DNA of 63,790 bases, the filler included, from Octopus bimaculoides (lineage: Eukaryota): NCBI RefSeq assembly GCF_001194135.2. It is 7 parts of 5 records of this genome, joined end to end, with 100 filler letters (N's around TTAATTAATTAA, not from the genome) between each part and the next. Parts side by side here need not be neighbours in the genome. Positions count along the whole stretch, not along the records: positions 18,098 to 44,852 come from NC_068981.1; 6 more parts are not named here. One strand, 5' to 3'. This document shows, piece after piece, positions 20,144-44,372 of the stretch. Positions within the stretch are counted from its first letter, which is position 1. The number at the start of each line of letters is the position of its first letter. A program made the position numbers and the translations under genes. The notes under the pieces were generated by a model. It saw only the letters and a list, made by a program, of their open reading frames with translations. It was not told where the DNA came from and searched no databases.

Positions 20144-20146
20144 AAA
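20144..20146 (-). CDS. Possible 3-nt microexon (TTT, Phe)
   Basis: Minus strand ...ATTTCATTTTCTTTCATATTGCAATTTGGCTATACCAG|TTT|GTAAGTA. Same architecture as the G and Y microexons, but no flanking exon is available to anchor it. Confidence 0.3.
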
Positions 20147-21984
20147 CTGGTATAGCCAAATTGCAATATGAAAGAAAATGAAATTTAATTTAGATATGGG
20201 AATATAATGAAATTTAGAATAAAATTTAAATGTTCAAAATAATCTTTATTAGCATTATACGACATGGGTTATTCCATAATAGAATAGTTTAATTATATGA
20301 ATGTACATAAAATATTGATTTCTTATATACAACACAAAATTATAAGCCTGAAGTTTGGAAATTCATGCTTTTCCAAAAGATAAATGAAGAGATATAGCTA
20401 CATCTGGGAATCAAAATTGGTTTGCAGTAAAATAATTCCTATCATGCATAACTGATGCAAAAATAATGATTATTATTATTATTTTCTTTTGTAAAGCTAA
20501 GTAGTTTGATCATTTGCATGGATCACAATATATCATAGGCATCTATTTTACCAATCTACTCAAAGAAAGGGCAGAACTGGCCATCGTTAAGATCTGAACT
20601 GCAAACCATGAGTCACTGTATTAGATACTCTCAGCTAGCTCATCTGTAGCATATAACGTGAACATGAATTGCCTCCCTTGGTGATTGATGGTTTAAAACT
20701 TGTACAAGTTCCATAGAATAATTTGCATGACAGATTATGGACTATACTGTATTTAGGTACAAAGAAAAAAAGTTCATACAGATTTTCAAATTTTTCAAAT
20801 ATATTAAATAGATGTTTAGTGATTATCCTCTTTTTCCCTACCCTCAAAATAGAACAATCTTTTCAAAAATAGCAATCTCCCTTTCGACTATTTTTTTTTC
20901 TAATTTGGGCATTAGGAGCTGAATAGCAAAAGAAAACCAGTTGTACAGTAAAAATGGGTTAACACTGCAACAGCTGAGTGCTAATCCAATTAAATTAAGC
21001 AGAGAAAATGCTGAGATGGATAAATTACTGTTTTATAAATTACAAACATCATGACAAATGTCAGGAGTTAGAGAGCAATTAGTTTTTGTAATGGGTGATC
21101 CTGCACAAAAAGGATATTATAAGTTGAGGCACCATATATAGAACTAGTGTCATAATGGGAGAATACATGCAACCAAAGCTCATTGTCATATGTGGTCAGA
21201 GAACGTTGTATCAAGATTTACAAGGTAATGATGTATTATATACATAGAACTGTCGATTATCAACTCAATTTTGTGATCCCGGTAACTGTGACTGCCACAA
21301 ACTATGTAGAGTCAATTGTAATACAATGTAGATGCAAAGATGTATGGATCTAACAATGCTATGATTCATGGTTATGTTAGGATTCCATTTATGGAAGAAA
21401 GAAAAATCAGAAAACTATATAGAAGATATTTTTTTTACTGTAATCATCATCATTGTCATCATAATAATAACAATGATTTCAAATTTTGGCACAAGGCCAG
21501 CAATTTTGGGGCAGGAGTAAGTCAATTACATTGACTCCAGTACTCAACTGGTACTTATGTTATCGACATCTTGAAAGAATGAAAGGCAAATTCAAATAAC
21601 AACAAGAGCACTCAGAGAGTGCAAATCTCTGCCAAAGCAAAAGCAATGTCCTCTCAACGATTAGCCGAAGATGATTTTTAAAATCAGAATATCTGAAATA
21701 AACTTGACTGCTCTCACAAATGGGAATACTGAAAATGAACCCAACCACTCTCAAAAATTAGGTAATAAAATAGAAAAAAATAATCCAGAATCCTTGTCCG
21801 GTACTGGCTCGATCACCACATCTAATCAGTTTGTGCCAGTCACAAGGCCAAACAACCTTAAAAGTTTCATCCAAATCCATCCAGGGGTTCTTGAGATACC
21901 TTGTCCAGAGACAAGCAGACAAACATGACTGAAAACAATACCTCCGCCTTCGCTAAGACAGAGGTAATAATGCTTTCTACTAAA

Positions 21985-22185
21985 AACACAAGGACTGAAA
22001 TTTTAAGGGAAGGAGCAAGTCAATTATGTTGACCCCAGTACATAACTGGGACTTATTTCATCAATCCTGAAAGAATGAAAGACAAAGTCGACCTCAGCAG
22101 AACTTGAACTCAGAACGTAAGGACGGACGAAATGCCACTAAGCATTTTGTCCAGCATACTAATGATTCTACCAGTTCGCTACCTT
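21985..22185 (-). mobile_element. SINE family B
   Basis: A-box-like TAGAATCATTAG, B-box GAGTTCAAGTTC and the family B core. Further copies lie at about 15110-15232, 21475-21600, 25690-25865, 34295-34505 and 55740-55890. Confidence 0.75.
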
Positions 22186-22617
22186 AATGATAGCAATGAT
22201 GGACTCTCCCATCAAAGATAACGTATGAGTATTCAACCTTTGTCAAATGACCTGCACAAAAGATTTGTTTATAGTGATCAAATGTCTGTGCTGCACATTA
22301 GCTCACTCTCTCCATCAAATCGATATTGTCTCAACAGGTGCACAGCGTACTACACCTCAGGTGTGAAAGTGATCACAGAAGAATGTGAGATTAAGTGCTT
22401 CGCTCACGAACACAATGCACCGCCAAGTCTAGGAACTGAAATCCTGATCACCGGATCGGGAGTGCAACAACCTAATAATTAACAACAATAATGTTCACTT
22501 TTCTATGCTTTCACAGGTCAGATGAAATTTGAGGCAAATTATTTTTATTTTGGAATAAACTGCAGGTAATGATGACCGAAATGAAGGTAACAGGGTTGTT
22601 ATGCTGAGAAAAAATGG

Positions 22618-23014
22618 TTTTACTCTTTTACTCTTTTACTTGTTTCAGTCTTTTGACTGTGGCCATGCTGGAGCACTGCCTTTAGTCGAGCAAATTGACC
22701 CCAGGACTTATTCTTTAGAAGCCTAGTACTTATTCTATCGATCTCTTTTGCCGAACCACTAAGTTACGGCGACATAAACACACCAGCATCGGTTGTCAAG
22801 CGATGTTGGGGGGGAAAAACATAGACACACAAACACACATACATATATACGACGGGCTTCTTTCAGTTTCCGTCTACCAAATCCACTCACAAGGCTTTAG
22901 TCGGCCTGAGGCAATAGTAGAAGACACTTGCCCAAGATGTCACGCAGTGGGACTGAACCCAGAACCATGTGGTTGGTAAGCAAGCTACTTACCACACAGC
23001 CACTCCTATGCCTA
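22618..23014 (-). mobile_element. Full-length tRNA-derived SINE family A
   Basis: Minus strand 5' AGGCATAGGAGTGGCTGTGTGGTAAG (A box TGGCTGTGTGG), GGTTCAGTCCC (B box), a central microsatellite and a (GTAAAAGA)n tail. Partial copies lie at about 3540-3700, 4850-5025, 27405-27570, 28680-28890, 43600-44190 and 63580-63720. Confidence 0.88.
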
Positions 23015-24426
23015 TTTCCTCATGGTTTTTATTATCAATCTCATCAGCTGTTGTGGTAGCCAATGACTAGCTTGGAGTCAGTTCTGGTCAAGTAGGCATG
23101 ATCACTTATGACCATCTTATCAGTTTTTCAATTGCGGTGCTTTTAGTACTACACTATCCAATGTGCTCTGTCATCTTTGTGTTCTTTTTTTTGTTTTTGA
23201 GTTTGTCGGGTGATGAAATGAGGGAAACGTGGTTGCTGTTTCTAGCCTGTCAGGTGATTAGAGTCTCTTTCAGTGTCCTTCAATGATAGGCAAACTAAAT
23301 GTTTTACAATACTTTGTTTCCCTCCTAAACCATTGAGTTTAAATTCTACCGTGGCTGGCTTTCTGTTATTCTATTGAATACATACAAGGATCATTTTAGT
23401 TGACAATTAAACTGTAGCCATCACAGGCAGGCTTTTGCTTATTGTTTTGGGTATCTATGCAGTTGTTGGCAGACCCAGACACTGTTTCAGCTTTCCCACA
23501 CTTTGATCCAGAGGAACATAAGAGATGTGACAGCTAGGGGGAGGAAGAGCTGCACTAGCACAAAGCTGGTATTAAATTTCAGTTCAACAGAATGGAATAA
23601 TATCAAATGAAGTGTATTTTTCAAGGACACAATACACTACTAGATCCAGAAACTGAACCCGTCACATTATGATTGTGAGCCCAACATCCTAACCACCAGG
23701 CCACATGCCTTCAACCCTCTCTTACAATCAGCATTCACATCAAGATTATCATAATCGCCATCATAATAAACATTTTGTGTCTATTCTAGAGAGATAAAAT
23801 TATGTGCAATCAAATGTTTTGCTTAAATAATACCACACAACTCCAATAATAAGATATGATGCCATGTACTCTGAGCCATCTTGTAATATATTGTTTTATT
23901 CATGAAAACAAAAATTGTAAAAAAAGAATTAAAAAAAAATTACACTAATGATTTTACAATTAAGAGGTTAATGATAAAGAAGACATCTGTTGTTAAAACA
24001 TTGCAGTGGAAGAAACTTTTTAAGCAAACATGTAAGAGATATTATGTATTTATGACAGTCAATAAGGTTTACTGATTAATTTTAGTGTAATGTTTAAGAA
24101 ACAAACTGATTCTTTGCCAGAAGCTGAAGCAAGTTAGGAATGAAATACCACATGAAAAGTGGTGATTAAGAAAGAGTAGAAAGAATTGAATCAAAGATTA
24201 TATGTGGAACCAGAACAAACAGCATGTATCTTTAATAGTAAATGATATGTCAGGTTGTCATTGTTGTTGTGACTGCTGTTGAGTAACTGTGTTAAATAGT
24301 AAGATGATAAGCTTTGGGATAAATGCATAATCATAACAGTTGTAAAATATTCAACATTCCAAGAAATTATGATAGGGGTAGAGGGAGAGAAAAAGGCTGT
24401 CTACAAGTAGTTACCAATGTTACTTG

Positions 24427-24466
<40 letters not shown>

Positions 24467-25871
24467 GAGAGAGCAGGGGAGAAATGTGTCTAGTAAATCC
24501 TGATAACATAATGATATTATTATAGAGCAGTTAGCCGTATCTTTGGCGAATAGTGGGAACCAGGATATTTTGTGTGAGTAGTTAATGGAACTGATGAAAA
24601 GATGCAAGCCAGGAGGTTTTTGAATGGAAACAAATGAATAATTAAATAGCAAAGTTTTGCTGTACCGCTAAACTAACAAACTGAAACTTGTAATTATAGC
24701 AATTACAGACAAGAAAATATCTGCCTGCACTCGGTGATATACTAAAATATGAATAGTGTTTGAGGTTTTCTCTCCCCAAATAAATGAGGCACAAAAAAGA
24801 AACAAGAGTCACTTTTAGATTTTTTTTTTTTTTAATTTTTTTTTCCCCTCCTATTCATTTTCTTTGTTGTGGTTGAGATAATTATAAGCTTAGCAAATTG
24901 TGAGTCGGCAGATTTCTCCAGAGGCAAACCAAAGAAAGGTTTGGCAAATGTTGGAAATCCTTATGATTTATTTATTTATTTATTTATTTTTTTTCTTTTT
25001 CTAATGCATTATGAGAATCAACAAATACATTGTAGTATGCAATTCCCAGTGGAACTTAGACAGAAATCAATATTATTTTTTTTTTTTTCATTTCTTTTTA
25101 CTTTGATAAAGCTTGACGAGTAGTGCTGTTGTTATGACTGTTTAGCCTCAGGTCAGCCCTGGTACTACACAATAATAATTAAAGGCATTCCAGCTGTAAT
25201 CCCCATCAACATTTTTTTCCCCTGTGCATAGTATAGCTGGGACAGCATTATTCAGATAGACAGAAGAGTGTTGTAATATGTATTACATTTGGCTGCTATT
25301 TCTAGTAAGTTGGTTGACTACATTAGAGGCTTCTCTGTTAGTTCAGGATGGTCAGAAATGGTAGAGATCTAAAGAAGTTGCTTATGCTATCTTGTTTCAA
25401 ATTCTGCTTGCACTGACTTAGCTTTTCATATCTCTGGATCCAATAAAATGAGTAGCATTGTTTTGATAGCCACATTTCCATGCTTGCATGTGTTTGACAA
25501 AATTCATTGAGATGGAGGTAGGTAAAACGAGTGTGGAACCTGTTTGTCAGCTAAACAGGCTGAGGCAATTAAGAGGTATTGCTTGCTTTGTTCTGCAGTA
25601 CCATATAATAACTACAGTGAAGCTTTAACTTATTATGTAATCAGTAATCCTTGATCATAACCTCATACTGTACTTCATCCACATCATCATTATTTGACCC
25701 TAAAAGGATGAAAGGCAAAGTCGACCTTGGAGTCCAGAATCTGCCATGGTTGACTTTGCCTTTCATCTTTTTGAGGTTGATAAAATATGTATCAGATGAG
25801 CACTGGAGTTGATGCAATCAATTAGTCCTCTCCTCCCAAATTTCAGGCATAACACCTATAGTAGAAACGTT

Positions 25872-26345
25872 TCATCATCATCATCATCATCGTTTAACGT
25901 CCGCTTTCCATGCTAGCATGGGTTGGATGATTTGACTGAGGACTGGCAAGCCAGCAGGCTGCACGAGGCTCCAATCTGATCTGGCAGAGTTTCTACAGCT
26001 GGATGCCCTTCTTAACGCCAACCACTCCGAGAGTGTAGTGGGTGCTTTTACGTGCTATCAGCACGAGGGCCAGTCACACGGTACTGGCAACGGCCTCGCT
26101 CAAAAGGTGTTTTTTTTACGTGCCACCTGCACGGGAGCCAGTCCAGTGGCACTGGCAACAACCTCGCTCGAATGATTTTCTAAATGTGCCACCAGCACAA
26201 GTGCTAGAAGGCGACGCTGGTAATGATTACGCTCAAATGGTGCTATTTACGGGCCACTAGCACGGAAGCAAGACAGCTGCTCTGGCAATGAACACGCTCG
26301 GACAGTGATGTTAGTGCTCCACTGGCGCAGGTGCCAGTCATCGAA
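25872..26345 (-). mobile_element. Short element made of the RTE LINE 3' tail, ending in (GAT)n
   Basis: Shares the GTGCCAC..GCACG..GCCAGTC..GGCACTGGCAAC repeats with 18097-18290. The terminal TTGG.GTTA.GAAGGGCATCCAGCTGTAGAAAC..AACGATGATGATG recurs at 27205-27400, 30085-30238, 30725-30887 and 41755-42075. Confidence 0.8.
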
Positions 26346-27172
26346 TATGGTTCGATTTCGATTTTGATTTTATTATTATTATTTATGTCAGAAGAAACAA
26401 TACTGCAAATAACTAATCTTTTTAATCAATCAAAATGGCTCATAAGACAAGTACTTATCCATGACTTTCATTTATTTGTGTGCTCAATGTCCATTTTGCA
26501 TGTTAGCATGCAACTTGGGCTGAGGACATATTTGAGGCAGGGTTTTTATGATTGGATGTTCTTCCTCTTGATGGACCTTATGTGATTTTTTTTTTCAACT
26601 TAGGGATTTTATTTTTATTCCACAGTTCTTTGAACACACAAAATGACCACTCTTACTGTCAACAAGGAAAGGAAACATCATAATCACTGTTTTACTTGGC
26701 CAGTGTCAAGCGTGGCTGTAGAATGTCAATATTTGTGCACAAATGAACACACCATACATACGTACATCTATATACATACATATATACATATATGCATGTA
26801 CAAAAGTTATGGAATGGAGTATGTAAGATCCAGGTTACATATGTTTCATAGTGGGCAGAATTGTTCGAAGCTAACCTTCTTCCTACACCTCAATCCCTGG
26901 ATCTTACATTATATATTATAGACAACATGAGATAACAAAGCCAAGGCTGCGAGGAGTTTTCAGGACATTTATAAGGAAAAAAGATATAGATATAGTCTTG
27001 CAGCTGTTTCTGGGATATCATGGATATTGCTTCATCAGAGACGATGTGAGATGGTTTAATAGAGGTGAATATTTGAGTTCGAAATAAGGAATTATTATGG
27101 AAAAGGAATCAATAGGGAATATAGAGGGAAATAAGAGAATGAAAGTAGAAGTAAAATATAAAATATTGTAGC

Positions 27173-27211
<39 letters not shown>

Positions 27212-29739
27212 TCATCATCATCATCCTTTAACATCCATTTTCCATGCTGGCATGGGTTGAACAGTTAGATCAGAGCTGGCAAGTCAGAGAGCTGTGCCAG
27301 GTTCCAGTCTGATTTGGCTTCGTTTCTATGTCTGAATGCTCTTCCTAATGCCAACCATTTTATAGACTGTGCTGAGTGCTTTTTACATGATACACACACA
27401 CTCATATGTGTGTTTGTGCATGAGACATACATATCCATATAGTTTCTGTTAACCAAATTCACTTGCAAATCTTTGGTAGGCCTGAAGCTATAGCAGAAGA
27501 CACAATGGGAATGAACCCAGATCCATGTGGTTGCAATGCAAACTTATAACCACAGAGCCCTGTCTGCTTCTGTAGCATTAAACGGAGGGATAATTCTTCA
27601 ATGGATAGAATGTTGGCCTTTCATAGATAACATTTTTCTGACAGAAGAACTGAACTCAGTACTGCATGCAAGTGAAAAACTCATTGATTCCTTAGTGCTG
27701 CCATTGCTTACAGCACAAGTTATTCCTCTTCCTATTCCTGCTGCCTGTTTATGGGTAAACGAACTTAGCTGAGTATCCTGATGGATGCAGGTAAGAGAGA
27801 AGAGTGAGGAGCAGGTGGTTTTAAACACAATGACATTATGAAAGCATGGGTAACAGAGATAAATAAATGCATGCTGCATCTTTATTTATTTAAAAAGTAA
27901 CATATATATATTTTGAAAATCAATTCAGAAAAATAAGTTCTGTTGTGAAAGCAAAAACGACTTTTTGAATGTTGAAATAAGATAAATTTGGTTTGCATTG
28001 CTTATCTCTTAACTCAGAACTTTATCTCATTATTCATTTATCACTTAGCAGTATTTTACTCTTATTTTTGTTTTTTAATCTGAATACGTCTTTCTATTGT
28101 TGTTATTGATGCAGCATTTGTTATTAATGTTGGTTTTTATAGAAAGTAGTTAATTTAATGTTTACACAACTTATGTAAAAAGCTTTATTCTTCTCTGCTC
28201 TTCTTCAATACAAGCAGAAATACACAAATATCACATACACATGCACAAATAACATGTACATGCACAAATAGTATGTACATATATACACATACATACACAA
28301 GTGCGTGAACTCTTCTGTAGTAGTTCAGATTCTAACATAAAGACTACAGTAATCTGTGTACTTAACATAATTTTCTCCATTGTTGTTGTTGGATGGTTGG
28401 AACACAAAGCAAAGAGGTAGTGGTGGTGGTGGTGGCGACAGGTTTAGTTTAATAATGGTACCAAGTTGAGAGAAGTGATATAATGGCTATATATGTGTCA
28501 GCAGATGTATCAGTGCCAGCTCACCAGTCCTGATGAATCAGCAGTGATACAATAACTCCAGGCATGGCAGTAGTGCCACCACATCTATAAGCTGAGGCCT
28601 GCTAACTCCAGATATACCAATAACAACAGTGCATAACATACAGCTAATATAACAGCACACAAATCAACAGTTACATAGTTTGGAGCTCAGTTCGACTGCA
28701 TAGCACCTTGTACAAGTGGTGTCTTCTACAATAGCCCTGGATTGACCAAAGTCTTGTGAGTGGATTTGGTAGATGGAAACTGAAAGAAGCCTATCGTGTG
28801 TGAGTGTGTGTGTACTTGTGTCTAAGTGTGTCTATGTTTATATCACCTTGTCTTGATGTTGCATGATTGTTGTAAATGACTACCATTCCTTTCCAACTTT
28901 CTGTACAACTCATACAAGCAAAAAAAAAAAAAAGTAGACAGTAAAACAATGATGATAATATAACAAATTCAGAAGTGTCAACTGAGACACCAAATGTATC
29001 AGAAATGACTTGCTGACTTCAAATATGCAAGCAGTATCTACCACTTGTAGACCTGTATGTGTGAACAGTGATGCACTGGCTTCAGCTGATTCACCAGTCA
29101 TATATGAAAAAGATTAAATGGGATATTTGAGTGACTGAGAAACCCATAAAAATTTGTTCAGTCTTGTGTCATATCACTTATTAATGACCTGTATGAGAAC
29201 TGTATTTCGTTATGCAACCATAATATATTACAAAGTACATTAAAAGCTTTTATAAGTGAATACTGTATTAGAAATGCTATCAAATCATCGTGTTAAAGAG
29301 TATTGAAAAGACTGACATAAATACCCACGGGCATGATTTATATATAAGAATATGAAAGGTTCCACAACATTTTGTTTTATTCAAGAATTTCGTTAAAGTG
29401 AATATAACGAATTAGCCTGACAGCCATATTTCTCCAATGTAAAACAAGAGTGAGGATAGTTTACAAATATAGTCTGCACCAGCATGAAAAAGTAAAATGT
29501 GAAACACGATACTTTTCAGATAACTGAGGATTGTGGGGAAAGTAATCTGAGTTTGCTTGGATTGGCCTAACTTCATGATCCTACATGAGGGCAGCAGACC
29601 AACATCTCATGTCCATACAGAGCAGGTCAACAAAGTTTTCCTCTGGACTACCATTCCATGCATATAGGTATAAGGGATGTCTGGAGTGTATCACTAATGA
29701 GTTATCATATAACTCTCTAGTAATATTTTGCAAAATGCA

Positions 29740-29770
<31 letters not shown>

Positions 29771-29874
29771 AATATCACAGTTTCTCCACAAGGAGTATTA
29801 TGTAGCTATGTCTATGTTTTTAGTCCACATGCGATATTTCTCATTAAACATAATCAAAACAAAACAATACTTAC

Positions 29875-29964
29875 TGTCTTTTGGTCCACATTAACACCAG
29901 GCTTCCCACACAATAATTTAACAACATCTGGTTTGCCATGTTTTGCTGCCCAATGAAGTGCAGT
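29875..29964 (-). CDS. sowah: Ankyrin-repeat exon, sosondowah (SOWAH)-like protein
   Basis: Minus strand AATTTTCTTTGTAG|90 nt|GTAAGTA, phase 0/0, translating TALHWAAKHGKPDVVKLLCGKPGVNVDQKT. This is an ankyrin consensus (TxLHxAA..G..V+KLL...+VN). TALHWAAKHG is recalled as typical of Sowah-family proteins, so the family call needs BLAST confirmation. Confidence 0.8.
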
Positions 29965-30533
29965 CTACAAAGAAAATTATTTAGATTTGTAAGCACAAAC
30001 TGAAAATAAGTCACATAATAGATTACTGTTATCATCAATATTGTTATTTATTATAAATAATTTTAATTCATTTTAATTCACTACACTCTCGGTGGTTGGC
30101 GTTAGGAAGGGCATCCAGCTGTAGAAACTGTGCCAAATCAGATTGGAGCCTGGTGTTGCCATCTGGTTCACCAGTCCTCAGTCAAATCGTCCAACCCATG
30201 CTAGCATGGAAAGAGGATGTTGAACGATGATGATGTTTGTGAGCATCTTATGCTGTGTTATCACCCTAGATGAATCGTCACAGAAATGTTTCAATAAAAC
30301 ATGCAAAAATATTTATAAAAAATACACAAAAATAAAATATCAGCAAAAGTATATATGTGAAATAAGTATGATCAAAAGTTCAATTCTAGTAGAAGCTTAC
30401 AACATCTACTCCAACTTGAGGAAATAAATGGCAGTCCCATGTCATAGCTCCAAAAGAGAACATGTCTGACCTGACTAATTATCCAACAACGGCCCTCTCT
30501 GTAATCACCTCAAGGGCTATTAGGATACTTCAA

Positions 30534-30916
30534 CCCTTTAACATTTAAACTGGCCTTATCTGGCCCAGACAATCTATCTGTTTCATGTTCAAACTGGCCA
30601 TGTCTAGCTTCTCAAACCTACCCTGCAACATCATTGTAAAATTAAACAATGCAATGACATCAATGAAATCTCAAAGCTGTGAGAAAATGCATGATTAATT
30701 CAAAACAAAGTAAATGAATAAGCACCAACCACTCTTGGAGTGGTAGGCATTAGGAGGGTTATCCAACTGTAGAAATGATGCCAAATCAGATTGGAACCTG
30801 GTGCAGCTCCCCAGCTTACCAGGTTTCAGTCAAACCATCTAACCCATGCCAACATGAAAAACAGATGTTAAATGATGACGATGATGATTTGACAGAGTAA
30901 TCTGAATGCTAAAGGG
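30534..30916. mobile_element. piggyBac-type MITE (CCCTTTA.CATT...AATGCTAAAGGG, TTAA target) interrupted by an RTE-tail insertion at about 30725-30887
   Basis: Terminal inverted repeats, right flank TTAA and left flank TCAA. A truncated sister copy lies at about 42420-42590. Confidence 0.65.
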
Positions 30917-32099
30917 TTAATGAAGGGAGTCCAACAAAGTCGCTTGACCTACTAGAAATAGCAGCTAAATCCTCTTCAAATCACTCTACTGATTTAAATA
31001 AAGAAGGATACATTGAATAATGTAGTCTGTTATATACAGAAAAACAGGATGATCATGGCTGGAACAACTTTGATCATAGGTCTTGCTCACCCAGAGCTGA
31101 CCTGCAGGAGTAAACAGCATCAACAATCGACTTTATGGTCTTTAATCCCTTTTCCTTTTCAGTGCTACTTCCAAAGAGTCATAACTACTTTGAACTTGTC
31201 TCCCTACATCACACATCAGTGGTCTCTCACTCTTGACAACCTCCAGCAAAGCTTTTAAACACGTCTGGTACATGCCACTTAAGTAATGTAATCTGCTAAA
31301 AAAAAAATAGACCACAAATTCATACTGATGAGTCAAATTCACTAGAATTGATCCCCAGTGCATAAGATGTTTGATAAATTATTGAAATCCTTTTTCGAAA
31401 GAAGGAAATACAGCAACAAGGTAAAAACTAGACCAGGTGATATAAATTCTAAATATAAAGGAATGAAAAGAAAATATCAGCTAACAAGCATTACCATTTC
31501 TGTTACTAAACCGCTTTTGTTAATAAATGGTACATGGAATAACTGGGAGAATTTTTAGCATGAGAACAATTACTGTAGCAATATGAAGGAAGGTGAGACA
31601 ATGGAAAAAATGAATATTGCAAAATGTGGTGATAGCTGTATTATGATCAAGAAACAAGAAAAATTTCGAGATATATCAGAATTTCAAATGTTAGGTTGCA
31701 ATGACACTGTCACTGAAGAAAATAGATGTAGAAAATGCAATGTCAAAAAATGTCTGTTTAATACAAACTATACAAATGTAAGACACTGAAGAGGTATTAG
31801 TGGTCAACAAAAGAACAATTATGAGAATAATCCAAAACTCATTGGAAAGTTTGTAAGAGAATTCTTTAAGTTTAATTGCTATGAAAGAGTGAAGAATCTA
31901 ACATTTAGGTGCCTTGTCCTTAATTAAAGACTGAGAGAGAGTGTATGTGTTGGTGGGTGTTATCATTTTGGCTATAAGCTAGCAGATAACACACATTCTA
32001 TAATATTTTAAACCCTTACATAAAAGACAAAGCTATGAGACCTTACATTTCTTCTACAAACTTCCATAGCGATGAGTGAAATACCACTAAGCATAATAA

Positions 32100-32695
32100 T
32101 AATCTTTACTATTATAGGCACAAGACCTGAAATTGGCTGGTACTTATTTCACCAACCCCAAAAGGATGAAAGGCAAAGTCAACCTCAGCAGAATTTGAAC
32201 TCAGAATGTAGAGATAGATGAAATACTGCTAAGCATTTTGCCTGGCATGCTAACGATTCTGCCAGCTTACTGCCTTAATAATAATCCTTTCTACTATAGG
32301 CACAAGATCTGGAGTTTGCAGGAAGGGGTACAGTCAATCACATTGACCCTAGTACTTAATTTATCGACCCTGAAAGGATGAAAAGCAAAGTTGACTCTGG
32401 TGGAATTTGAACTCAGAACATAGTGGCAGATGAAATACCACTAAACATTTCACCAGCTCACCACCTTAGTAACGATAATGATAATAATAATTCTTTCTAT
32501 TATAGGCACAAGGCCTGAAATTTTTGGGAAGGGGACTTGTCAATTACATTGACCCCAATGTTTCACTGGTACTTAATTTATTGACCCCGAAAGGATGAAA
32601 GGCAATGTTGACCTTGGCAGATTTTGAACTCAGATTATAGCAACAGCCGAAATACTGCTAAGCATTTCGCCCTGCATACTAACGGATAATAATAA
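32100..32695 (-). mobile_element. Three head-to-tail SINE family B copies separated by (TAA)n
   Basis: Three repeats of ..ATAGGCACAAG..GAAAGGATGAAA.GCAA.GT..ACC...GAAT(T)TGAACTCAGA..GAAATAC..CTAA, each bounded by TAATAAT. Confidence 0.8.
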
Positions 32696-34524
32696 TAATT
32701 TCATCTGCCAAAGGACATTGTATGGATACAGAACAATTGACAGAAATGCATGTTGATGGTCGTGGTGGTGGTGGTGGTGGTGAAGGGCCAGATTTGTGCC
32801 TCTGTATTTTTAGTTTCAAATAAAGCTAGTATTGATTTAATGAGTCACCTTTCTAGTATTGATACATTAAATACCAGCAAAATAATGGATGTTGATTGAT
32901 TTAATCAATCAAACCCATCTCCCTACAAAGAAAAAAAAAAAAAAAAAAAAAGAAAGAAAAAAAATAGCTGCATAAAAAAAAAAGAAAAAAAGGTAACATA
33001 AGCAAAAATTTACTTGATTTTTGCTGATTGTTTAGTTTAGTTTTCCTTGTTGCAGCAGCAGCTGCTCTTTTATATATTTATTATTCTTTTGTTTCCCCAT
33101 CACCCATTGATTTGCAGTGTAATCTATCTCGTTAGCATGCAGCAACCAATTAACAAATAATATATGAGAAAACACTAGACTACCAGAACTGAACTGGTTG
33201 ATGGTATTTTTATTGTATTTACCTTTTTTTTTTTTTTTCCTTCCTTACTAACACAAATAGGCACACAGAAACATCAGTGTTTGTAAAACAGTAGAAAATA
33301 CTCAACCTAGATGGTAGTGGTGATGGGGATGGTGGCAGTGAAGGTGGAGGTGATGACAATGATGAAAATTACCTATCTTTAAAAACAGAAGTTTAAGTGC
33401 ATGTGTGTGTGTATGCACACATGCAAATATGTTTCGTGTGTGTGTTTGTGTGTTTATATATATTTATATACATATATATGCACGCATATTCATACATAGA
33501 ATTGGAAGGACATATGGATATTTGAATGTATTTATTTACACATACACACATGCATGCACACAACATTACAAATAATTACATATACATACACATACTCCCA
33601 TTCATGTCACCCACTTGCACATGCATACACCCAACCCCTGCCCATAAACAAATCACAAAAGTAATTGTTTTAAAAAAGAAACAAAGTGAGGAAAGAACAT
33701 GAGGGAAGTGGTCTCAGAAAAAGAAACAAAAACCAAAAAAAAAAAAAACATGTATAAAAGTGTAAATACAGGGGAAGAAAAATAGAAGAGAGGAATAGAG
33801 AGAGAGAGAGAGAGAGAAAGAGAGGGATTGTGTGTGTGTGTGTGTGTGTAAAATGAAGATGAGTATAGACATGAAGCAAACACTCTGTGGTAGGTCTTTT
33901 CAACAACGGGATCCCCATTCCACTATCACCCATTCCTGTATTGCTGCCACATCTCTGAGTTCTTTCACTGCATCACCACCGACATTACTTCGCACAATAT
34001 TCAAATGTATATTATAAGAAAAAAGAAAAAAAAAAATGAGGGCCACTAATGGTCACTAATCTTACTAAAGATAGCAAATGAATTAATGTGAAATCTCAAC
34101 TTATCCTCTCGAAAAGCATAGATATTTTGGATAATATAGTCCGAGATACACTGTGTGAAAATATGATGGGATGACCTGGTCACTACTGGTTGGAATGCTT
34201 AAAACCATAGTAAGATCTAATCAGGCTTTACTTAGGGGCTAAATAACATTCTTGCCATTGAGCTGGTACTTGATCCTTCATGCATTAAATATTAGTTTCA
34301 AATTTTGGCACAAGGTCAGTGATTTCAGGGGAGGGGATAAGACGATTACATCAACCCCAGTATTCAACTGGCACTTATATTATCAACCCTGAAGGGATGA
34401 AAGGGAAAGTCAAACTCAGCAGAATTTGAACTCAGAATGTAAAGACGGACAAGATGCCACTAAGCAGTTTGTCCAGCATGCTAACGATTCTGGCAGCTAG
34501 CCGTCTTTCATCCATTGACTAGAA

Positions 34525-34740
34525 ACCCTTTTGATCCCAATGCACTTGAGACTAATTCTATGATACAAACTTCTTGTTTTAAAATCAACTAAATTCAAAT
34601 AGCCCATCAAAATTCTATGTTAATTTATGTTCCAGCTACCAACTTAAAAGAAAGAAAATTATTAAAAAAAAATTATTATTTTCAAAATTAATTGAAACAA
34701 TGGTAATGTGTATCAACATAATTTGGTAACAAAAGGGTTA
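34525..34740. mobile_element. Second piggyBac-type MITE
   Basis: AACCCTTTTG... at the left end and ...CAAAAGGGTT at the right end form terminal inverted repeats. Confidence 0.45.
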
Positions 34741-35459
34741 GTTTTGTGTTAAAATTTGTTTCATTGTTCTTGGATTGCTTCTTTATTGTTGGAATAGATT
34801 GATGAAATTACTGTGGTAAAAGTTGATAAACCTTGTTCTGAAATATTATTTTGGAAAAGAAAAGTGTGTCATATAAACTATCATATATCTATTTGTGATT
34901 ACATGACATATAAAACAGCAGTAAAGGCATGTGGCATGAAAAGTAAAGTTTTTCTCTGCTACCAAATCATATTTAATTGTGAAGAGGTGAAAGAGACAAA
35001 GGATGAGAAAGAGACACCATATTAGTGTTATAAATAAGAATCAATAAAGTTAATCTTTCAACACACGTATCCACATCAAGAATCTTGCACACAAAATACA
35101 CATATGAAATAGAATAAAGTTAATATTTTGTGAATGATCATTCTTTGATTTGCATTACTTGATTATACCACCTATCACTTTCCTGCATAGACTTTGGGGA
35201 GATTGGCAGGAAAACACCCTTTTTCTATAGAGAACTGGTTGAAGGATTTTTGCTGGACGGTCAACCAATATGTATCCATATCAGGATCTCCAGAAGAATG
35301 TATCATGAATGAGTTCTTGCTTCTTTTCATTAGTACTGAGTATCTTGATTGTTATCAGAGAATAACTGGTATTTAAAATGGCCATGTTAAAGAGAGCTAT
35401 CAGTTAAGGTTAAGAAATACAATAAATTGATACTATATTTAAATCTCTCTCCCTCTCAT

Positions 35460-35493
<34 letters not shown>

Positions 35494-36736
35494 TTGTATG
35501 TTGTGCAAGTTTAGTGTAAATAAATAGCAAATGCACTGCTTGAACCAGTTTTAATTTCTGGATAAAACAACTTCACTTAGTTCAAAGAAGATCTAGGAAA
35601 ATTTAACTTAATTTAGTGAGGTTCCCCAAGAAAAGAAAGAATGAAATGCTAAATCAGTCTTGTGCTCACTCATATCCAAGAGGAACACTTCTTTCCCTTC
35701 TTTTTAAAAAAGAGATCTGATTATGAATCCTTTAATCTTAAAATAAATGTAAAAAGAAGAATAAAAAATATGTAAGAAATAGTAATTTTCTTATTTATTT
35801 AGAGAACCTATTGCCAATTATATAAATTTCATTTCTGATTAATGTGTAAAAAAACAAAAAACAAACAAACAAAAAAAGTGACATTGGCATGAGTATTGTT
35901 ATGAAGTGAGCAAGTCTTCAAACTCTTCATTGAAGGTTGGCATTAGCAGCAGCTGGGGAGCTGAAGTTGGCTACAAAAAGAAAGTGAGGGGAGGAATGAG
36001 GGAACTGGTATTAACAGTTGAGTGAAAATATGTGTGTGTGTGTGGACAGGAGAACAATATATCAGGAGCTGTTCTCTTGCTACATAAATAATCAATTTAA
36101 ATAAATAATCAGAATGATGTCTGAAATTTAAAAAAAGGAAAGAAAAATAATATGATGAAGCCAGGATGATAAAGCTCCCTTCTTGCCTGTAACAATGGAT
36201 GTTGTATGAATAAAATATTTAACCTCAACCCAACTGCTGCCATTTTAACACAGCTTTTGACTTGCCCTGTTCTTTAGTTTTTCACTGTATATGGACACAT
36301 TAAAATAGATTTAATTTTACAACTACAACTATTTCTAAGTATTAAGTTGTCTGTACCTTTGGATTTATTGCAACTAACCCACTGCCAAATATGAAGTGGG
36401 GGCAATGATGAAAGAAAATCCAAAATAAAAAAAGAAAAGCAACATTAATGAAAGTTAATATATATAAATATAACTAAATTAAAAATATAAATGAATAAGT
36501 TGTGAAGAAATTCAAATGAGTATTATTTATTACAGAGGTGGGAGGCTGGAAAACAAAACAAACCCCTGCAAAGTAGGAAACACCTTACATTTAGCCATTT
36601 ACCATGTCAGTTGGGTATAATGGGGTGTTGTTGTGATGGACATCCAACTAACAATAGGAAAGAAGAAAGTGAGAGAAGACACCTTTCTGAAAGGTCTCAA
36701 TAGTCTTTGTGAATTACTCAGGCTCATGACATGCAG

Positions 36737-36790
<54 letters not shown>

Positions 36791-37394
36791 NNNNNNNNNN
36801 NNNNNNNNNNNNNNNNNNNNNNNNNNNNNNNNNNNNNNNNNNNNNNNNNNNNNNNNNNNNNNNNNNNNNNNNNNNNNNNNNNNNNNNNNNNNNNNNNNNN
36901 NNNNNNNNNNNNNNNNNNNNNNNNNNNNNNNNNNNNNNNNNNNNNNNNNNNNNNNNNNNNNNNNNNNNNNNNNNNNNNNNNNNNNNNNNNNNNNNNNNNN
37001 NNNNNNNNNNNNNNNNNNNNNNNNNNNNNNNNNNNNNNNNNNNNNNNNNNNNNNNNNNNNNNNNNNNNNNNNNNNNNNNNNNNNNNNNNNNNNNNNNNNN
37101 NNNNNNNNNNNNNNNNNNNNNNNNNNNNNNNNNNNNNNNNNNNNNNNNNNNNNNNNNNNNNNNNNNNNNNNNNNNNNNNNNNNNNNNNNNNNNNNNNNNN
37201 NNNNNNNNNNNNNNNNNNNNNNNNNNNNNNNNNNNNNNNNNNNNNNNNNNNNNNNNNNNNNNNNNNNNNNNNNNNNNNNNNNNNNNNAATATTAGGGATA
37301 AAATCCAAAATTACAGGTAAAAACTCAATTAAAATCAATTCTCTAATACTATATATATGAGTGTGCATCCTGAGTGTTTGTCTCCTTTTCAATT

Positions 37395-37426
<32 letters not shown>

Positions 37427-37850
37427 CAACCACAATGATAACTAAATTTCCCAAGCAAAAATAAGAGCAATACTTTTAAAGTCAATGCCTACCACATTGC
37501 TTATCACTTTATAGCCATCGGAAATAAGGGTTGACCTTAAATGAAAAGACTTGGTTGAGAGACAATCTTTCAGAAGTCTGAAAGCCTTGTTATAGATAGC
37601 CAAATAGACAGAGAAGTAAAGAAAAGAATGGAGTGTGAGTTTACTACAGCAAAAGAAAGCCATGGTAGGTATAACTGCTGTGGTATCAATTCATTAAACA
37701 TTTGGCAATACAAAGAAAAGGTAACTCATGTACCTCATTCAACAGAGAGTCTATGCAAATGATGGCGTGTTGCTCACCACATTACAAACCAGACAAGAAA
37801 ATGGCAATCCAGCATGCTAGGTCTGTGGCTGGTGTGTAGATCAGTTGCTA

Positions 37851-37919
37851 CCGAACAATATAGCAATACAATGAAGCCGAACAATATAGCAATACAATGA
37901 AGCCGAACAATATAGCAAT
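37851..37919. repeat. 26-bp minisatellite, about 2.7 perfect units (CCGAACAATATAGCAATACAATGAAG)
   Basis: Directly visible. Confidence 0.9.
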
Positions 37920-39339
37920 CCCAAACAAAACTGGTACTGTCATGTTCTAGACCTGTGTAGGGTACAATGAAGGTAACAACTACTATTATTTAAATGAGAT
38001 CCAAAAAGTATAAGAGTAATATTTAGTAGTAAATCATCTCCCATCTCCTTATAAATCAACACTGTATTAATTCCTCTTGCGTTTGTTCAGCTCATTCACA
38101 ATTTGCACCAGGTTCTCACCACTGATTCGGATGACCATGAAGATTAGGCTCAGCAAGCAGACAGGTGCCCTACCATGAGGAACTTCCAGTAGCCTACTTG
38201 TTCTTTGTTTTGTTCTTTTAGACTGGGGCCCAGACTTTTGCATCTTTTACTGGTTTTATTTTCCTAAACAGTTTCCATCCCATCCTTCTCTATGTTCTAT
38301 CTCCTCCTCAACAATATCTCAAGATGATGGAAAACAACTGCTGCTTGGTAACTCTGGCCAGTTCAGTGCTTGAGGCGTGTATACCTTGTCCTTTCTCTGC
38401 TCTACCTCATCCGCCATTGGCATGAGTAGCACTGAGGACAACATAATTCTACTTGACTTTGCTTCTACTCCAGTTATTCTCAGAGCTGTGATTAGTGAGG
38501 CTCTGGAAACATTATTAGCAGCATCTATGGTCTTCACTGCTGGGGTCTGCTGCTGTTGTTTCTACCCTCTTAATTTTTCTCTCCTTCTGGGCAGAAGGCC
38601 CTTAAGAGGTCTTTACTACTAAACATGTAGCGATTGGGCCTTATGTCCTGCTCCACCAGTCAAATTGACTGCCTCTTTACTTCCTCAATGAGATACAGCT
38701 TCACAAGAGCATTGTGGTGAAAATCTAAAGGTCTATGCAGATCATACCCAATATGTTAATGTAAGTCCCCTCCATGTTCCCAGCAGTTGCAACTGGACCA
38801 GACCAACGCATCAAACAAAAGGAAAGATACTAAATGCAATTTTACAATCCATGATGATGATGATAGCAGACATATTCTTGTGACAAAGTGCAGAAATAAC
38901 GAAGAAAATATATCGTAGTAGTGCTGTCATAGAAGTCGTCAGAAGTAATGTAATCTAATAGATAAATTTTAACATAGACATACACAGTGAGTGCAATAGA
39001 AATAGAAGCTTTTAGTGAGCTAAGACCCAAGCATGGTCTTGATTTCAAATTGTGGCCATTTCAGTTCAGTTGTATCAGTGCTAATGCTCAGTAGAGAAAC
39101 ATGGACATGACAAAATCTCACTTCTTTCTTTATAAATCTGAGACTTTGTAAAAAGAAACAAGTCAAAACATCATCAGTGCATCATGTGGTACATGACAGA
39201 CAAAGGGGTTTTCAGAAATTTATAAATAGTCGGAGGTCCTTATGAGAAGGGGTTGTTTACCACTATTAATCAATACAGAATAGAATCAACCAATCATGGA
39301 AGTTGGACAGTGTCTCTTAACAAGTGGTAGTTGTGACAG

Positions 39340-40100
39340 GGACAGCATTACTAATAGTGGCAGTAGTGGTGGTGATAGTAATAGTGATAGAGCTGTAGTT
39401 GTGGTGGTGGGGAGGGTGATACTAGTGATAGAGAAGTGATAGTGATGGTGATAATAGTAGTGGTAGATGGATAGTGCTGGTGGTGATGATGATAACAGTA
39501 ATAAAAAGATGGCTATTACAGTGAGTGAGATAATGGTGTTAGTGATAGTAGTAGTGGTGGTGGTTAGGAAGCAGTGGTGGTGGTTAGGAAGCAGTGGTGG
39601 CAGTGACTGCTATAGTGATGATGGTAATGGCAGAAGTAATAGTGTTAATGTTGGCAATAACAACAGTGAGAGTGACTGTTGTGGCTACAGTTGTGTTAGT
39701 GACAGTGGAGTAGTACAGCAACAATAGATGTATCATAGCAGCAATGATGACAGTAGAAGTAGTAGTGATGGTGGTGGTGGATGTGTTAGTAGTAATAGTC
39801 ATGGTGGGGGAGGTGTTAGCAGCAGTAGGAGTAGTGATGATGGTGGTGGAGGTAGTAGTAGAAGTAGTGATGGTGGTAGAAGAGGTAGTAATAGTAATGG
39901 TGGAGGTAGTAGTAGTGATGGTGGTGTTAATAGTAGTAGTAATAGTGATGATGGTGGCAGCAGTAGTAGTAGTAGTAGTAGTACTGATGGTGGTGATGGA
40001 GGTGCTAGTAGTAGTAGTAGTTACAAAGGTGCACAGAGGTGACAGGGACGGTGGTGAATGAATTGATGATAGTAGCAATGATAGTGATGGTGAAGAAGGT
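39340..40100. repeat. Degenerate (AGT/GGT/GAT)n cryptic simple repeat
   Basis: Directly visible. It accounts for the poly-T/V/S ORFs. Confidence 0.9.
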
Positions 40101-40341
40101 GGTGGAGAAGTTAAACTATACCAGAAACAAAGAAATACTTCTATATGTAAAGAGCAGTCTTGTGTTAGTTAACGAACAGTAGTTTATTGATCTCAAGGCT
40201 TGATGAGCTAGTAGTGACTCAGAGAGTACTTCCCAAAGTACACTGATAACAAAGCCAGAGGTCAAGTGAACCGTTTAGGTGCACTGGTCGACATATGGTC
40301 AACAGATATAAACATTAGGTGAACTTTCCAATTAGAAAGTA

Positions 40342-40876
40342 CTGGGTTGGCAAGAAAGTAATTTCGGCTTTTTAGTGTGAAATAAAAGTCATTTTTTTTT
40401 TTCATACAAAGAATGAACTTTAATTAATTATAAATTTCCCATTTTGTTTGATGACCTTTTGCCATCTTTCTGACAACTTCATGATTCTGTGCTCATAGAA
40501 CTTCTGGTCCTTATCAGCCAAAAACTGAAGCTAGTGTGACTTCAGGTGGCCATCATCATTATTGAAAGTTTTGCTATTCAAAGAATTTTGCAAACTTCGA
40601 AATAAATGGTAATCTGATAGTGCAAGGTCAGGGTTATATGTAGGATATGACATCACTTCCGAACCAAGCTCCAATAATATTTCATGAGTCAGCAAAGACA
40701 TGTGGTCTAGTATTGTCATGGTGGAACACGATTCCTTTATGATTTGCCAATTCTGGCTGTTTTTCTTTGATTGCTTCCTCCAGTTTCATTAGTTGTTGAC
40801 AGTAAACATCTGAATTGATTGTTTAGTTCCTTGGAAGCAGCTCAAAATACACAACGCCTTTGTAATCCCACCAAAT
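40342..40876 (-). mobile_element. Mariner transposon 3' remnant
   Basis: Minus frames WWDYKGVVYFELLPRN and YPTYNPDLALSDYHLFRSLQN (approx. YSPDLAPSD). The terminal repeat CTGGGTTGGCAAG follows a TA. Confidence 0.8.
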
Positions 40877-42182
40877 TGACATTTAAAGAGAATTATCTTG
40901 ATGTTATTGATATTCCAGTGCTGTGACACAGACAGGTACTCTATTAACTTGACTTAGTATCTAATTTATAAAGTAAAATCAATAAGGACAATTATATCCA
41001 ATGTTTTTTGGTTTCTAATAAACATTTCATGATGATGATTGTGATGATTTGACTGGCAGGTTGAATGTCTGTCATTTAATTGAAACACTATTAATCTTGT
41101 ACTTACTGGAAACTTAAATTAGACAACAAAATATCCCGTTTTATTTACACATGTTAATTGAAGCTAGCTAATATGTAACATGTTATAATGAAATCAAAGA
41201 AATACAATATTTGTTTAGTATTGTTGATAATGGAAATAATATAGAGAAAATTACTAAAACAAACCATTTAAAGAACTTTTAATGATTATTTAAGGAGAAA
41301 CAAGAATCTGATATTTGGTTCTGGTACCAACGATCTTAAAGTTCATGAAAGTAAATAAACTTCATTTAATTTTAAAAATTTTAACAGATTTTCATGAACT
41401 TAGGCTATCATTAGATTGCTCATCCCCCACCTCTGATTCATTGTTGCACATATATTTCATTACTCAGGACTCAGTGGAACATCCAGAATTTGAGAGCTAG
41501 AAAGAGAGAGACACCTGCCCTGGCACTCAGCTTGTACTTATTTACAGCTGACAAGACTGAAGTAACATGAAATGAAGTGCATGGTTCTAGAATTGAACAT
41601 ACAACCTCCTGTTTATGAGATGAACACCTTGAATATTAGCTCATAAAATATCTCAGTAATGGAAAGCCATGGACAGAAATGAGACATGTTTATACTGCTT
41701 ATACAATCAAGAAGGAAGTTGAAGTGGCCTGAAGAAGTTTCTACATTTCCTTAGCAGTGATCATCATCACCATCATCATTTAACGTCCATTGCCCATGCT
41801 GGCATGGGTTAGGCAGTTTGACTGGACTGGCATGCTGGAAGGCTGCACCAGACTCCAATCTGATTTGGCATGGTTTTCTATGGCTGGATGCCCTTCCTAA
41901 CGTCAACCACTCCGAGAGTGTAATGGGCATTTTCACATGCTGCCAGGATGGGTACCATTTGTGTGACACTGGGGTGCTATTATGTGCCACTGGCACAGGT
42001 GCCAATTTGCATGACACCAGTATCTGCCACAAATGCAATTTTACTTGGTTTGATGGGTCTTCTTCTCAAGCACGACATAATGCCAAAAGTAGGATGTTTA
42101 AAAAAAAAAGAGAAAAACATGATTCTTGAAAACCTAAAAAAAAAATGAATATAGTAAATAAATATAGGAATGTTTTACTTAC

Positions 42183-42185
42183 ATA
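42183..42185 (-). CDS. sowah: 3-nt microexon (TAT, Tyr) of the ankyrin gene
   Basis: Minus strand ...TATTTATTTGGTTTCCTCAAACAG|TAT|GTAAGTAAA. It supplies the Y expected immediately before TALHW, in phase 0. Confidence 0.62.
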
Positions 42186-42594
42186 CTGTTTGAGGAAACC
42201 AAATAAATATTCAGAGTTCCAGGATAAATTAGAAAGTCATAAAAAAAAGTAGGGAAAGAGAGTAGTGAGAAAAGTATGAAATACATTAAAAAATTAACAG
42301 ACATATATATGCATGCATACACACATAAATTTATGTTAAACTAAATATATTAAGAGTACAAATATCACAGAGCATAAACCCAAACTATGTCAGATACAAA
42401 ATGTTATTAGGCACATTGACCCTTTAGCATTTAAACCTGCCATATCCAGCAAAAATATTTCACTCATTTAATGTTCAAACTGGCTGTATCCAACCTCTTT
42501 CACCTACTCTACAATGTCATTGTAAAATAAACAATCACATCACTGAAATCTCAAAACCACAAAACAATGTGAATAACTAAGCATTGACACATAC

Positions 42595-42835
42595 AGCGAA
42601 GGTGTGTGGCTTAGTGGTTAGGGTATTTGGCTCATGATCGCAAGGTTGTGAGTTCAATTCCCAGTGACACGTTGTGCCCTTGAGCAAGACACTTTATTTC
42701 ACGTTGCTCCAGTCCACTCAGCTGACAAAAATGAATAGTACCTGTATTTCAAAGGTCCAGCCTTGTCACACTTTGTGTCTGTAGAGTGCTCAGCTACTTG
42801 CACGTTAATTTCACAAGCAGGCTGTTTCAGTTTGA
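42595..42835 (+). mobile_element. tRNA-derived SINE family C
   Basis: A box TGGCTTAGTGG and B box GAGTTCAATTCCC, followed by GTGCCCTTGAGCAAGACACTT. Confidence 0.75.
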
Positions 42836-43330
42836 AGAGTAACAAAATGATTTTTGAAAACTTTATTCCTATTTTCATTATTCAATTACAAGAAGAAAAC
42901 TATATTTTCCAGATTTGTAAAAACTGCTTCGAAAACTAGCTCCCATGCCAATCAGTTTTAATCAAATAACTCTAAAACACTAGATCAAATCCTGAAACAT
43001 CTCCATGCACAAGATAAACATTTGTACTCAACATTTTCCAATAATTTCTGACAATGTTGTTGGTTCTGGTAGAAACACATTTTGTTGTGAACAGAAAAAG
43101 ATTAATTGATAAATGAGAACTTTGTCATACAAGAACACTAAGCTTTATACAATGGCTTCTTATTGAAACAACTTTCAGACAGAATGCAAATTAATTAGCT
43201 TCAGTATTATTCTTTCCTATTGTCAACAACAGACGCAGATACATTATAACAGGGAGTCTTTTAATATAAAGAGTTATTTCAAAGATTTGCATATCTTTGT
43301 TTTAACCATGAGAAAAGAAAATTTACTTAC

Positions 43331-43333
43331 ACC
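43331..43333 (-). CDS. sowah: 3-nt microexon (GGT, Gly) of the ankyrin gene
   Basis: Minus strand ...TTTCTGAATTTGGAATCACTTCAG|GGT|GTAAGTAAAT. It supplies the G of G-Y-TALHW, in the correct order upstream of the Tyr microexon. Confidence 0.62.
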
Positions 43334-44247: not shown

Positions 44248-44372
44248 NNNNNNNNNNNNNNNNNNNNNNNNNNNNNNNNNNNNNNNNNNNNNNNNNNNNN
44301 NNNNNNNNNNNNNNNNNNNNNNNNNNNNNNNNNNNNNNNNNNNNNNNNNNNNNNNNNNNNNNNNNNNNNNNN

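Follow-up and report, generated by a model that had tools for sequence, protein, structure and literature searches.

How does a gene encode the first residues of an ankyrin (ANK) repeat when the exon that carries the repeat begins after the repeat has already started? This question is raised by a gene of the Sowah (sosondowah ankyrin-repeat) family in Octopus bimaculoides, part of which lies in the window, the 63,790-nucleotide (nt) stretch of joined genomic DNA, filler included, that we analyzed (assembly GCF_001194135.2). The piece under study comes from record NC_068981.1 and covers positions 18098-44852 (26.7 kilobases, kb); the features of the gene lie on its minus strand, and all window positions count along the whole stretch. 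We propose that exons of 3 nt each, encoding Gly (G), Tyr (Y) and Phe (F), very probably supply single residues at the edges of the first ANK repeat of this Sowah protein.

The ankyrin exon and its family

The only conventional coding exon detected in the piece is the 90-nt ANK exon (Table 1), in which the intronic bases ttctttgtag are followed by ACTGCACTTCATTGG...CAAAAGACA and then by gtaagtatt, and which translates as TALHWAAKHGKPDVVKLLCGKPGVNVDQKT. The codon just 5' of its initial ACT is an in-frame TAG, with a TAA four codons further upstream, so this exon cannot extend upstream to encode GY. A preliminary description of this DNA had the exon begin in phase 0 at the T of TALHW, and both the sequence and the in-frame stop codon support that assignment. 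Neither an ANK consensus nor a Sowah-like bait detected a second ANK exon in the piece by tblastn.

To retrieve homologues, we used a profile made from the window exon and the ANK region of human SOWAHC, which served as bait only. This profile retrieved 165 Sowah-family proteins. The bait was ~85% identical to partial SWAHC proteins of birds over nearly all of it, which validates the bait, and 97% identical to a JGI protein over about half. Used alone as a homologue query, X-padded or doubled, the 30-residue exon translation returned no candidates, and against the protein representatives it matched giant multi-ANK proteins and no orthologues, because scores are summed over repeats.

The window exon carries a first ANK repeat with the TALHWAAKHG signature, and from this signature and the retrieved homologues we conclude that the window gene is a member of the Sowah family; the N-terminal Sowah domain and the Iroquois linkage both lie outside the 26.7-kb piece. 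The closest match, P0241 (UniParc UPI000695159B; profile E = 1.5e-12), is 100% identical to residues 7-30 of the exon and continues into the second Sowah repeat and an IRD(Y/H)SGKK..QYL tail, a part of the gene that is also outside the piece. P0241 has no genomic locus on record.

Almost every intact Sowah homologue has the sequence (S/T/H/N)-G-(Y/F)-TALHWAAKHG...K(S/T)-x-G-G(Y/F)T(A/P)LH, in which K(S/T) and G(Y/F)T are separated by exactly two residues (HG, NG, SG, FG or FS). The motif GYTALHWAAKHG, which the preliminary description had given, is therefore a real feature of the family. When the Pfam Ank model is aligned to the killifish protein P0206 (model positions 2-32 to residues 47-77), the G that precedes the exon falls at Ank position 2 and the Y/F at position 3, which leaves position 4 for the T of TPLH, where the ordinary exon begins. 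Of the two residues that follow this exon, x closes repeat 1 and G opens repeat 2, each as a single position.

Candidate single-codon exons around the ankyrin exon

The residues that the family has before TALHW are found upstream of the ANK exon as two isolated codons, GGT and then TAT, and a third such codon, TTT, lies 9.7 kb downstream of it (Table 1). At all three sites, 3 nt stand between an acceptor AG and a donor GTAAGTA. The minus strand reads ...aatcacttCAG, GGT, then GTAAGTAAAttt at the G site and ...tttcctcaaaCAG, TAT, then GTAAGTAAAaca at the Y site, where the acceptor is preceded by the pyrimidine-rich run tttatttggtttcctcaaacag. Both upstream sites had been reported previously, and we read them on the same strand and at the same positions. 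The 1145-nt distance given for the intron between them also stands, but the 12.2 kb given for the next intron holds only for the sequence as assembled, as this intron spans a 497-N assembly gap (36791-37287) and its real length is uncertain.

The third site had been assigned no role. We identify TTT as the counterpart of the x microexon that orthologous loci have after the ANK exon; it would encode the first residue of the x-G pair between ...QKT and the G-F-TPLH of ANK repeat 2. P0252 (KS-FG-GYTPLH) and a mite protein, P0271 (RS-FS-GSTPLH), also have Phe at this position. In P0241, the corresponding place is taken by VSI, three residues where the Sowah family has two. Translating the nine bases that open the intron 3' of the ANK exon, GTAAGTATT (29866-29874, minus strand), gives VSI, which from this sequence looks like a gene-model patch over missed microexons.

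Read as exons, the three codons are in frame and in phase 0 at all junctions, each encodes the family residue, and their position and order are conserved in orthologues. The spliced product would read ...G-Y-TALHWAAKHGKPDVVKLLCGKPGVNVDQKT-F-(G)-GFTPLH..., and we infer that the codons are included in O. bimaculoides mRNA. The predicted junctions are GGTTATACTGCACTTCATTGGGCA (G-Y-TALHWA) and GACCAAAAGACATTTGGN (DQKT-F-G), and GGTTATACTGCACTTCAT would be the sequence expected in reads. Homology predicts a second Gly microexon and the GFTPLH exon below position 18098, and a 12-nt exon encoding D-F/P-x-S/T either above 44852 or within an assembly gap.

Two assembly gaps, at 44248-44372 and 44650-44659, are within 1.5 kb upstream of the G site and are a possible place for the 12-nt exon. 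A candidate second Gly site near 18600 (ttgag/GGT/gtgtca) was dropped for its poor donor. A GYT-encoding stretch next to the F site (GGC TAT ACC, 20149-20157, minus strand) belongs to the acceptor region with no AG preceding it; it is intronic, and we judged it coincidental.

We calculated how often such sites would arise by chance. Using Markov models of orders 0-3 fitted to the piece, the pattern CAGNNNGTAAGT is expected 0.07-0.09 times per strand, or 0.02 times with the trailing A, and CAG-NNN-GTAAGT was observed three times on the minus strand and not at all on the plus strand. The preliminary description had estimated about 0.1 expected sites, which our computation upholds, from an AT content of 66%, which we correct to ~63.5% excluding N. 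GTAAGT occurs seven times on the minus strand; one occurrence is the ANK exon donor, and of the remaining six, three directly follow CAGNNN. All three sites lie in unique sequence, and their flanks do not align with one another, showing that they are not copies of a repeat. The probability of finding AG-GGN-GTRAG and then AG-TAY/TTY-GTRAG, in that order, upstream of the ANK exon is ~2.6e-3 in the window.

Table 1. Features of the Sowah gene piece in the window (whole-window positions) and of the fetched orthologous loci (locus coordinates, first exon base or range, on the gene strand). Microexons are candidates.
Locus	Feature	Position	Strand	Details
Window	G microexon GGT (Gly)	43331..43333	minus	acceptor CAG 43336-43334; donor GTAAGTAAA from 43330
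Window	G-to-Y intron	42186..43330	minus	1145 nt
Window	Y microexon TAT (Tyr)	42183..42185	minus	acceptor CAG 42188-42186; donor GTAAGTAAA from 42182
Window	Y-to-ANK-exon intron	29965..42182	minus	12,218 nt as assembled
Window	ANK exon	29875..29964	minus	90 nt; phase 0 at both ends (tag/ACT ... ACA/gtaagt)
Window	ANK-to-F intron	20147..29874	minus	9,728 nt
Window	F (x) microexon TTT (Phe)	20144..20146	minus	acceptor CAG 20149-20147; donor GTAAGTATT from 20143
Window	SINE-like copies	41760-41941, 25874-26056, 27208-27357		same orientation
Window	SINE-like copies	30079-30235, 30730-30888		opposite orientation
L003 amphioxus	12-nt exon GATTTTGTCTCG	524		DFVS
L003 amphioxus	G microexon	1418		GGG
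L003 amphioxus	Y/F microexon	2856		TTT
L003 amphioxus	ANK exon	14814-14903
L003 amphioxus	x microexon	15380		CAT (H)
L003 amphioxus	second G microexon	16451		GGG
L003 amphioxus	GYT exon	20521
L004 spider	G microexon	535		GGG
L004 spider	Y microexon	2613		TAT
L004 spider	ANK exon	11175-11264
L004 spider	x microexon	13097		AAT (N)
L004 spider	second G microexon	14304		GGT
L004 spider	GYT exon	14446
L006 tilapia (Oreochromis niloticus)	DFIT exon	4474
L006 tilapia	G microexon	6954		GGG
L006 tilapia	Y/F microexon	9919		TTT
L006 tilapia	ANK exon	12649-12735
L006 tilapia	x microexon	21416		CAT (H)
L006 tilapia	second G microexon	21591		GGG
L006 tilapia	GYT exon	27970
L007 killifish	DFIT exon	5180
L007 killifish	G microexon	5700		GGG
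L007 killifish	Y/F microexon	8445		TTT
L007 killifish	ANK exon	10661-10747
L007 killifish	x microexon	13267		CAT (H)
L007 killifish	second G microexon	13349		GGG
L007 killifish	GYT exon	14591
L001 wasp Odynerus	Y microexon	4234		TAT
L001 wasp Odynerus	ANK exon	17002-17100
L001 wasp Odynerus	6-nt NG exon	17222-17227		AACGGG
L001 wasp Odynerus	GYT exon	22728
L002 wasp Mischocyttarus	ANK exon	10151-10249
L002 wasp Mischocyttarus	6-nt NG exon	10634-10639		AATGGG
L002 wasp Mischocyttarus	GYT exon	18074
L005 (European Nucleotide Archive contig)	ANK exon, end	10264		12-nt exon fused; G and Y/F fused to ANK exon
L005	x microexon	10704		AAC (N)
L005	second G microexon	10939		GGG
L005	GLTPLH exon	11454

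Conservation in orthologous loci

We scanned the gene strands of the fetched orthologous loci for AG/NNN/GT[AG]AG (Table 1). That the start of the repeat is built one residue per exon, as first suggested for O. bimaculoides, is borne out by ordered G and Y/F sites of 3 nt in amphioxus, spider, tilapia and killifish, and their x and G sites extend this one-residue-per-exon pattern to the junction with repeat 2. A phase-0 intron directly before the T is common to two wasps, amphioxus, spider and the two fish, and a Y/F microexon is found in every fetched locus with this intron except that of the wasp Mischocyttarus (L002), where the upstream flank is too short to reach the 12-nt, G and Y/F sites. 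In the upstream regions of amphioxus and spider, the scanned pattern has no non-stop 3-nt match besides the G and Y/F sites, and the TAT site of the wasp Odynerus is the only strict AG-NNN-GTAAGT match in the 17 kb upstream. With the strict GTAAGT donor, the opposite strands gave no matches except two in L002. For four loci other than the window, the ordered G-then-Y/F arrangement has a probability of ~1e-3 apiece; multiplied over all five loci this gives 3e-14, in which the two fish are not independent.

Several loci depart from the full arrangement. The 12-nt exon was not found in the spider locus or in the Odynerus locus. The x and G codons are fused into a single 6-nt NG exon in both wasps; this exon is annotated in the Odynerus model P0230 and missed in the Mischocyttarus model P0224. 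In L005, the microexons that are kept are the downstream N and G pair only. A tblastn search for the upstream conventional exon in the wasp locus did not find it, and a weak tblastn match, DWISCAARG, is not an exon.

The amphioxus locus has an additional match, cag/GTA/gtaaga, at L003:14966-14968, 63 nt after the ANK exon donor. Its use would give three residues rather than two, and it is probably a chance or decoy site.

Inclusion and omission in gene models

When the 12-nt exon and all four 3-nt exons are joined with the other killifish exons, the product matches residues 2-103 of the NCBI model P0206 exactly, with residue 1 coming from an upstream exon. At least one NCBI model of a fish gene implicitly contains the Sowah array. 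The tilapia NCBI model 'SOWAHC isoform X1' (P0211) is reproduced when the DFIT and F exons are included and the G, H and G exons are left out, an omission that reflects either alternative splicing or incomplete evidence. These two reconstructions indicate that the NCBI pipeline already uses one-codon exons in fish and that it models at least one isoform in which some of them are skipped.

The models that lack the microexon residues are P0234, P0240, P0230, P0224 and P0211. Several invertebrate models start at the T or have an aberrant 5' sequence, as in amphioxus (RPIK/TALHWGAKHG) and spider (GAESV/TALHW), and the wasp models without GY read MLHACRQ/TALHW and SLSLLQ/TALHW; some invertebrate models also lack the x-G pair (for example, LRT/GYTPLH). 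Proteins without GY had been predicted as the result of missed microexons, and the amphioxus, spider and wasp models are of this kind. Comparison with the genomic sequence shows that these models lack the residues because the gene predictors missed the microexons.

Weighing of alternative explanations

Several observations weigh against the proposal that the three codons are exons. It rests on genomic sequence and gene models; the fish models are partly computational, so P0206 is no proof of RNA, and P0241 is fragmentary and begins inside the ANK exon, making it uninformative on GY. The tilapia model X1 lacks three of the four codons, and inclusion is thus possibly not constitutive. The pyrimidine fraction over positions -25 to -1 of the window sites is only moderate (0.56-0.64), and a search of the piece for the second Gly microexon and the 12-nt D-F-x-S exon found neither. 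Conservation in insects, which the preliminary description had proposed as a check, was seen for the wasp TAT site but not for the G site, for which the 4.2 kb preceding the Y site in Odynerus gave no match. Finally, the upstream conventional exon lies outside the piece and might itself end in GY.

A possible, though rather unlikely, alternative is that the microexons are real but alternative and tissue-regulated (for instance, neural and Srrm234/eMIC-dependent), with isoforms lacking G, Y or F altering the hairpin loop. The exon content of tilapia P0211 would agree with regulated use and is the one hint that skipping might tune binding, as the preliminary description had suggested; most described animal microexons are neural-regulated (PMC10250204), and TGC is enriched upstream of the acceptors (mean 0.89 versus 0.48 in the control; 27 sites, P ~0.004). 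However, the window G and Y sites have no TGC between -40 and -4, and the number of sites with at least one TGC (14 of 27 versus 10.3, P ~0.10) is not significant. In addition, the G at Ank position 2 is near-invariant, the only intact homologues without it being evident mis-predictions, and a 33-residue ANK repeat would probably be disturbed by losing a residue at its start.

We consider it very improbable that the sites are unused chance motifs and that a conventional upstream exon ending in G-Y splices directly to the ANK exon. Such an exon would be outside the piece and not open to inspection, and GY is contiguous with TALHW in the genome of some taxa (the P0250 group, L005, P0216 and P0219). 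Against this explanation stand the three sites found where ~0.08 are expected, with none on the other strand, and the low probability of the required residues occurring in the required order in the window alone. Chance would also have to account for the same arrangement in amphioxus, spider and two fish, for its use by the NCBI killifish model, and for the Y/F microexon at every fetched locus with an intron before the T, save the short-flanked L002.

It is hardly credible that the sites are recursive-splicing or decoy stepping stones for long introns that are not kept in mRNA. As at recursive splice sites (PMC6110457, PMC6224609), the surrounding introns are very long (from 1.1 to 12 kb here and as much as 15 kb in tilapia), a near-perfect GTAAGT donor accompanies the 3' splice site, and intron segments would be removed stepwise. 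But AG and GT must abut at recursive sites, which leave nothing in the mRNA, whereas at all sites described here three coding bases intervene so that no donor is re-formed, these bases always encode the residue that the family needs there, and the killifish model includes the codons.

A possible mechanism and history of the array

We propose a mechanism for inclusion of the Gly, Tyr and Phe codons that builds on the 27 microexon sites that we compiled. Their donors are GT[AG]AGT at 26 sites, although the scan did not impose the T at +6, and GTAAGT at 21; the acceptors are mostly CAG, with moderate pyrimidine tracts. Pairing of U1 from -3 to +6 would cover the whole 3-nt exon as well as the acceptor AG, so the two splice sites would not be engaged together and the flanking introns would be removed sequentially. 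The near-perfect intronic donor may compensate for exon positions -3 to -1 being fixed by the codon. After ligation on one side, the microexon would be part of a normal-sized exon, from which the second intron could then be removed. For most SRRM4-dependent microexons the downstream intron is removed first (PMC10250204). In the Sowah gene, splicing could plausibly begin at the ANK exon and proceed upstream as a chain reaction.

The array of 12, 3, 3, ~90, 3 and 3 nt was probably inherited from the bilaterian ancestor. Large Sowah introns are reported to house enhancers of the neighboring Iroquois genes, and parental Sowah is reported to have been replaced by intronless retrogenes in tetrapods (Maeso et al. 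2012, for both points as cited in PMC12311624 and PMC5803294). Loss of these introns through recombination with complementary DNA (cDNA) would delete the Iroquois enhancers, which could have frozen the tiny exons in place. Where this constraint is gone or introns have been lost, the codons would be fused into ordinary exons, and the fused versions that we found (the upstream pair of L005, the P0216 and P0219 contigs and the NG exon of wasps) fit the enhancer-constraint idea. On balance we lean slightly towards a history in which a cluster present in the bilaterian ancestor, with four one-codon exons and the densest such run known in animals, has been kept for >500 million years by introns locked in place by Iroquois enhancers.

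Relation to known microexons and significance

Single 3-nt exons are known in animals. Coding exons of 3 nt have been described in mouse Ncam, Drosophila TnT, cytohesin-1 (diglycine/triglycine), MAP4K5 and RPS24 (PMC8042270, PMC6314551, PMC8632122, PMC12207440). The Sowah sites resemble these in having one codon between AG and GT that keeps the frame, adds one residue and is often overlooked in alignment and annotation. However, the known cases are lone 3-nt exons, or one beside longer microexons (3, 18 and 22 base pairs in RPS24), whereas Sowah genes would have up to four single-codon exons and a 12-nt exon around one ordinary exon, in an array conserved among fish, amphioxus, spider and O. 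bimaculoides. A passage in a 2015 article (PMC4674806) put the smallest constitutive exon at 6 nt and the smallest alternative exon at 3 nt. Our literature search found no paper that links Sowah, or the aliases ankrd57/43/56/58, with microexons.

Conserved clusters of 1-15-nt exons, termed microexon-tags, are known from plants (Yu et al. 2022, PMC8831610). They are tiny constitutive coding exons that share with the Sowah array a conserved position and phase, widespread misannotation, sometimes adjacent pairs, and fusion by intron loss. They differ in belonging to plant genes and other protein families, in which the adjacent pairs are of 5 + 12 nt and similar sizes rather than runs of single codons. 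Neural microexons dependent on SRRM4/eMIC (PMC10250204) are also very short, with moderate or weak acceptors and probably a fixed splicing order; these encode surface insertions, whereas the Sowah exons would supply core residues within a structural repeat, and for the Sowah exons neural regulation and a UGC signature are at most possible.

Animal spliceosomes are not known to include exons smaller than 3 nt, and the lone examples of this size have been treated as curiosities. The Sowah array would offer a strict case for the ordered splicing of exons too short for exon definition, and it would tie the persistence of tiny exons to the need to keep introns that carry enhancers of neighboring developmental genes. 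If our interpretation is correct, the array is a natural system for studying how exons below the spliceosome's own footprint are processed, and possibly also how one-residue changes in the ANK hairpin are regulated. Annotation fails reproducibly at these exons, as in the amphioxus, spider, wasp and tilapia models, and a homology-guided microexon-tag search could repair it.

Other features of the introns

The long intron between the Y site and the ANK exon contains a degraded mariner-type transposase at ~40423-40822 (minus strand), which matched Pfam Transposase_1 with E = 1.2e-5 when frame fragments were joined. Also on the minus strand, positions 39289-40168 hold ~0.9 kb of trinucleotide-type low complexity with open frames rich in T, S, H, Y, L and P in all three frames; this stretch was not coding by any test made. 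An interspersed repeat of ~160-180 base pairs that resembles a short interspersed nuclear element (SINE) is present in five intronic copies with 78-82% identity (Table 1), one of which begins ~240 nt downstream of the Y microexon.

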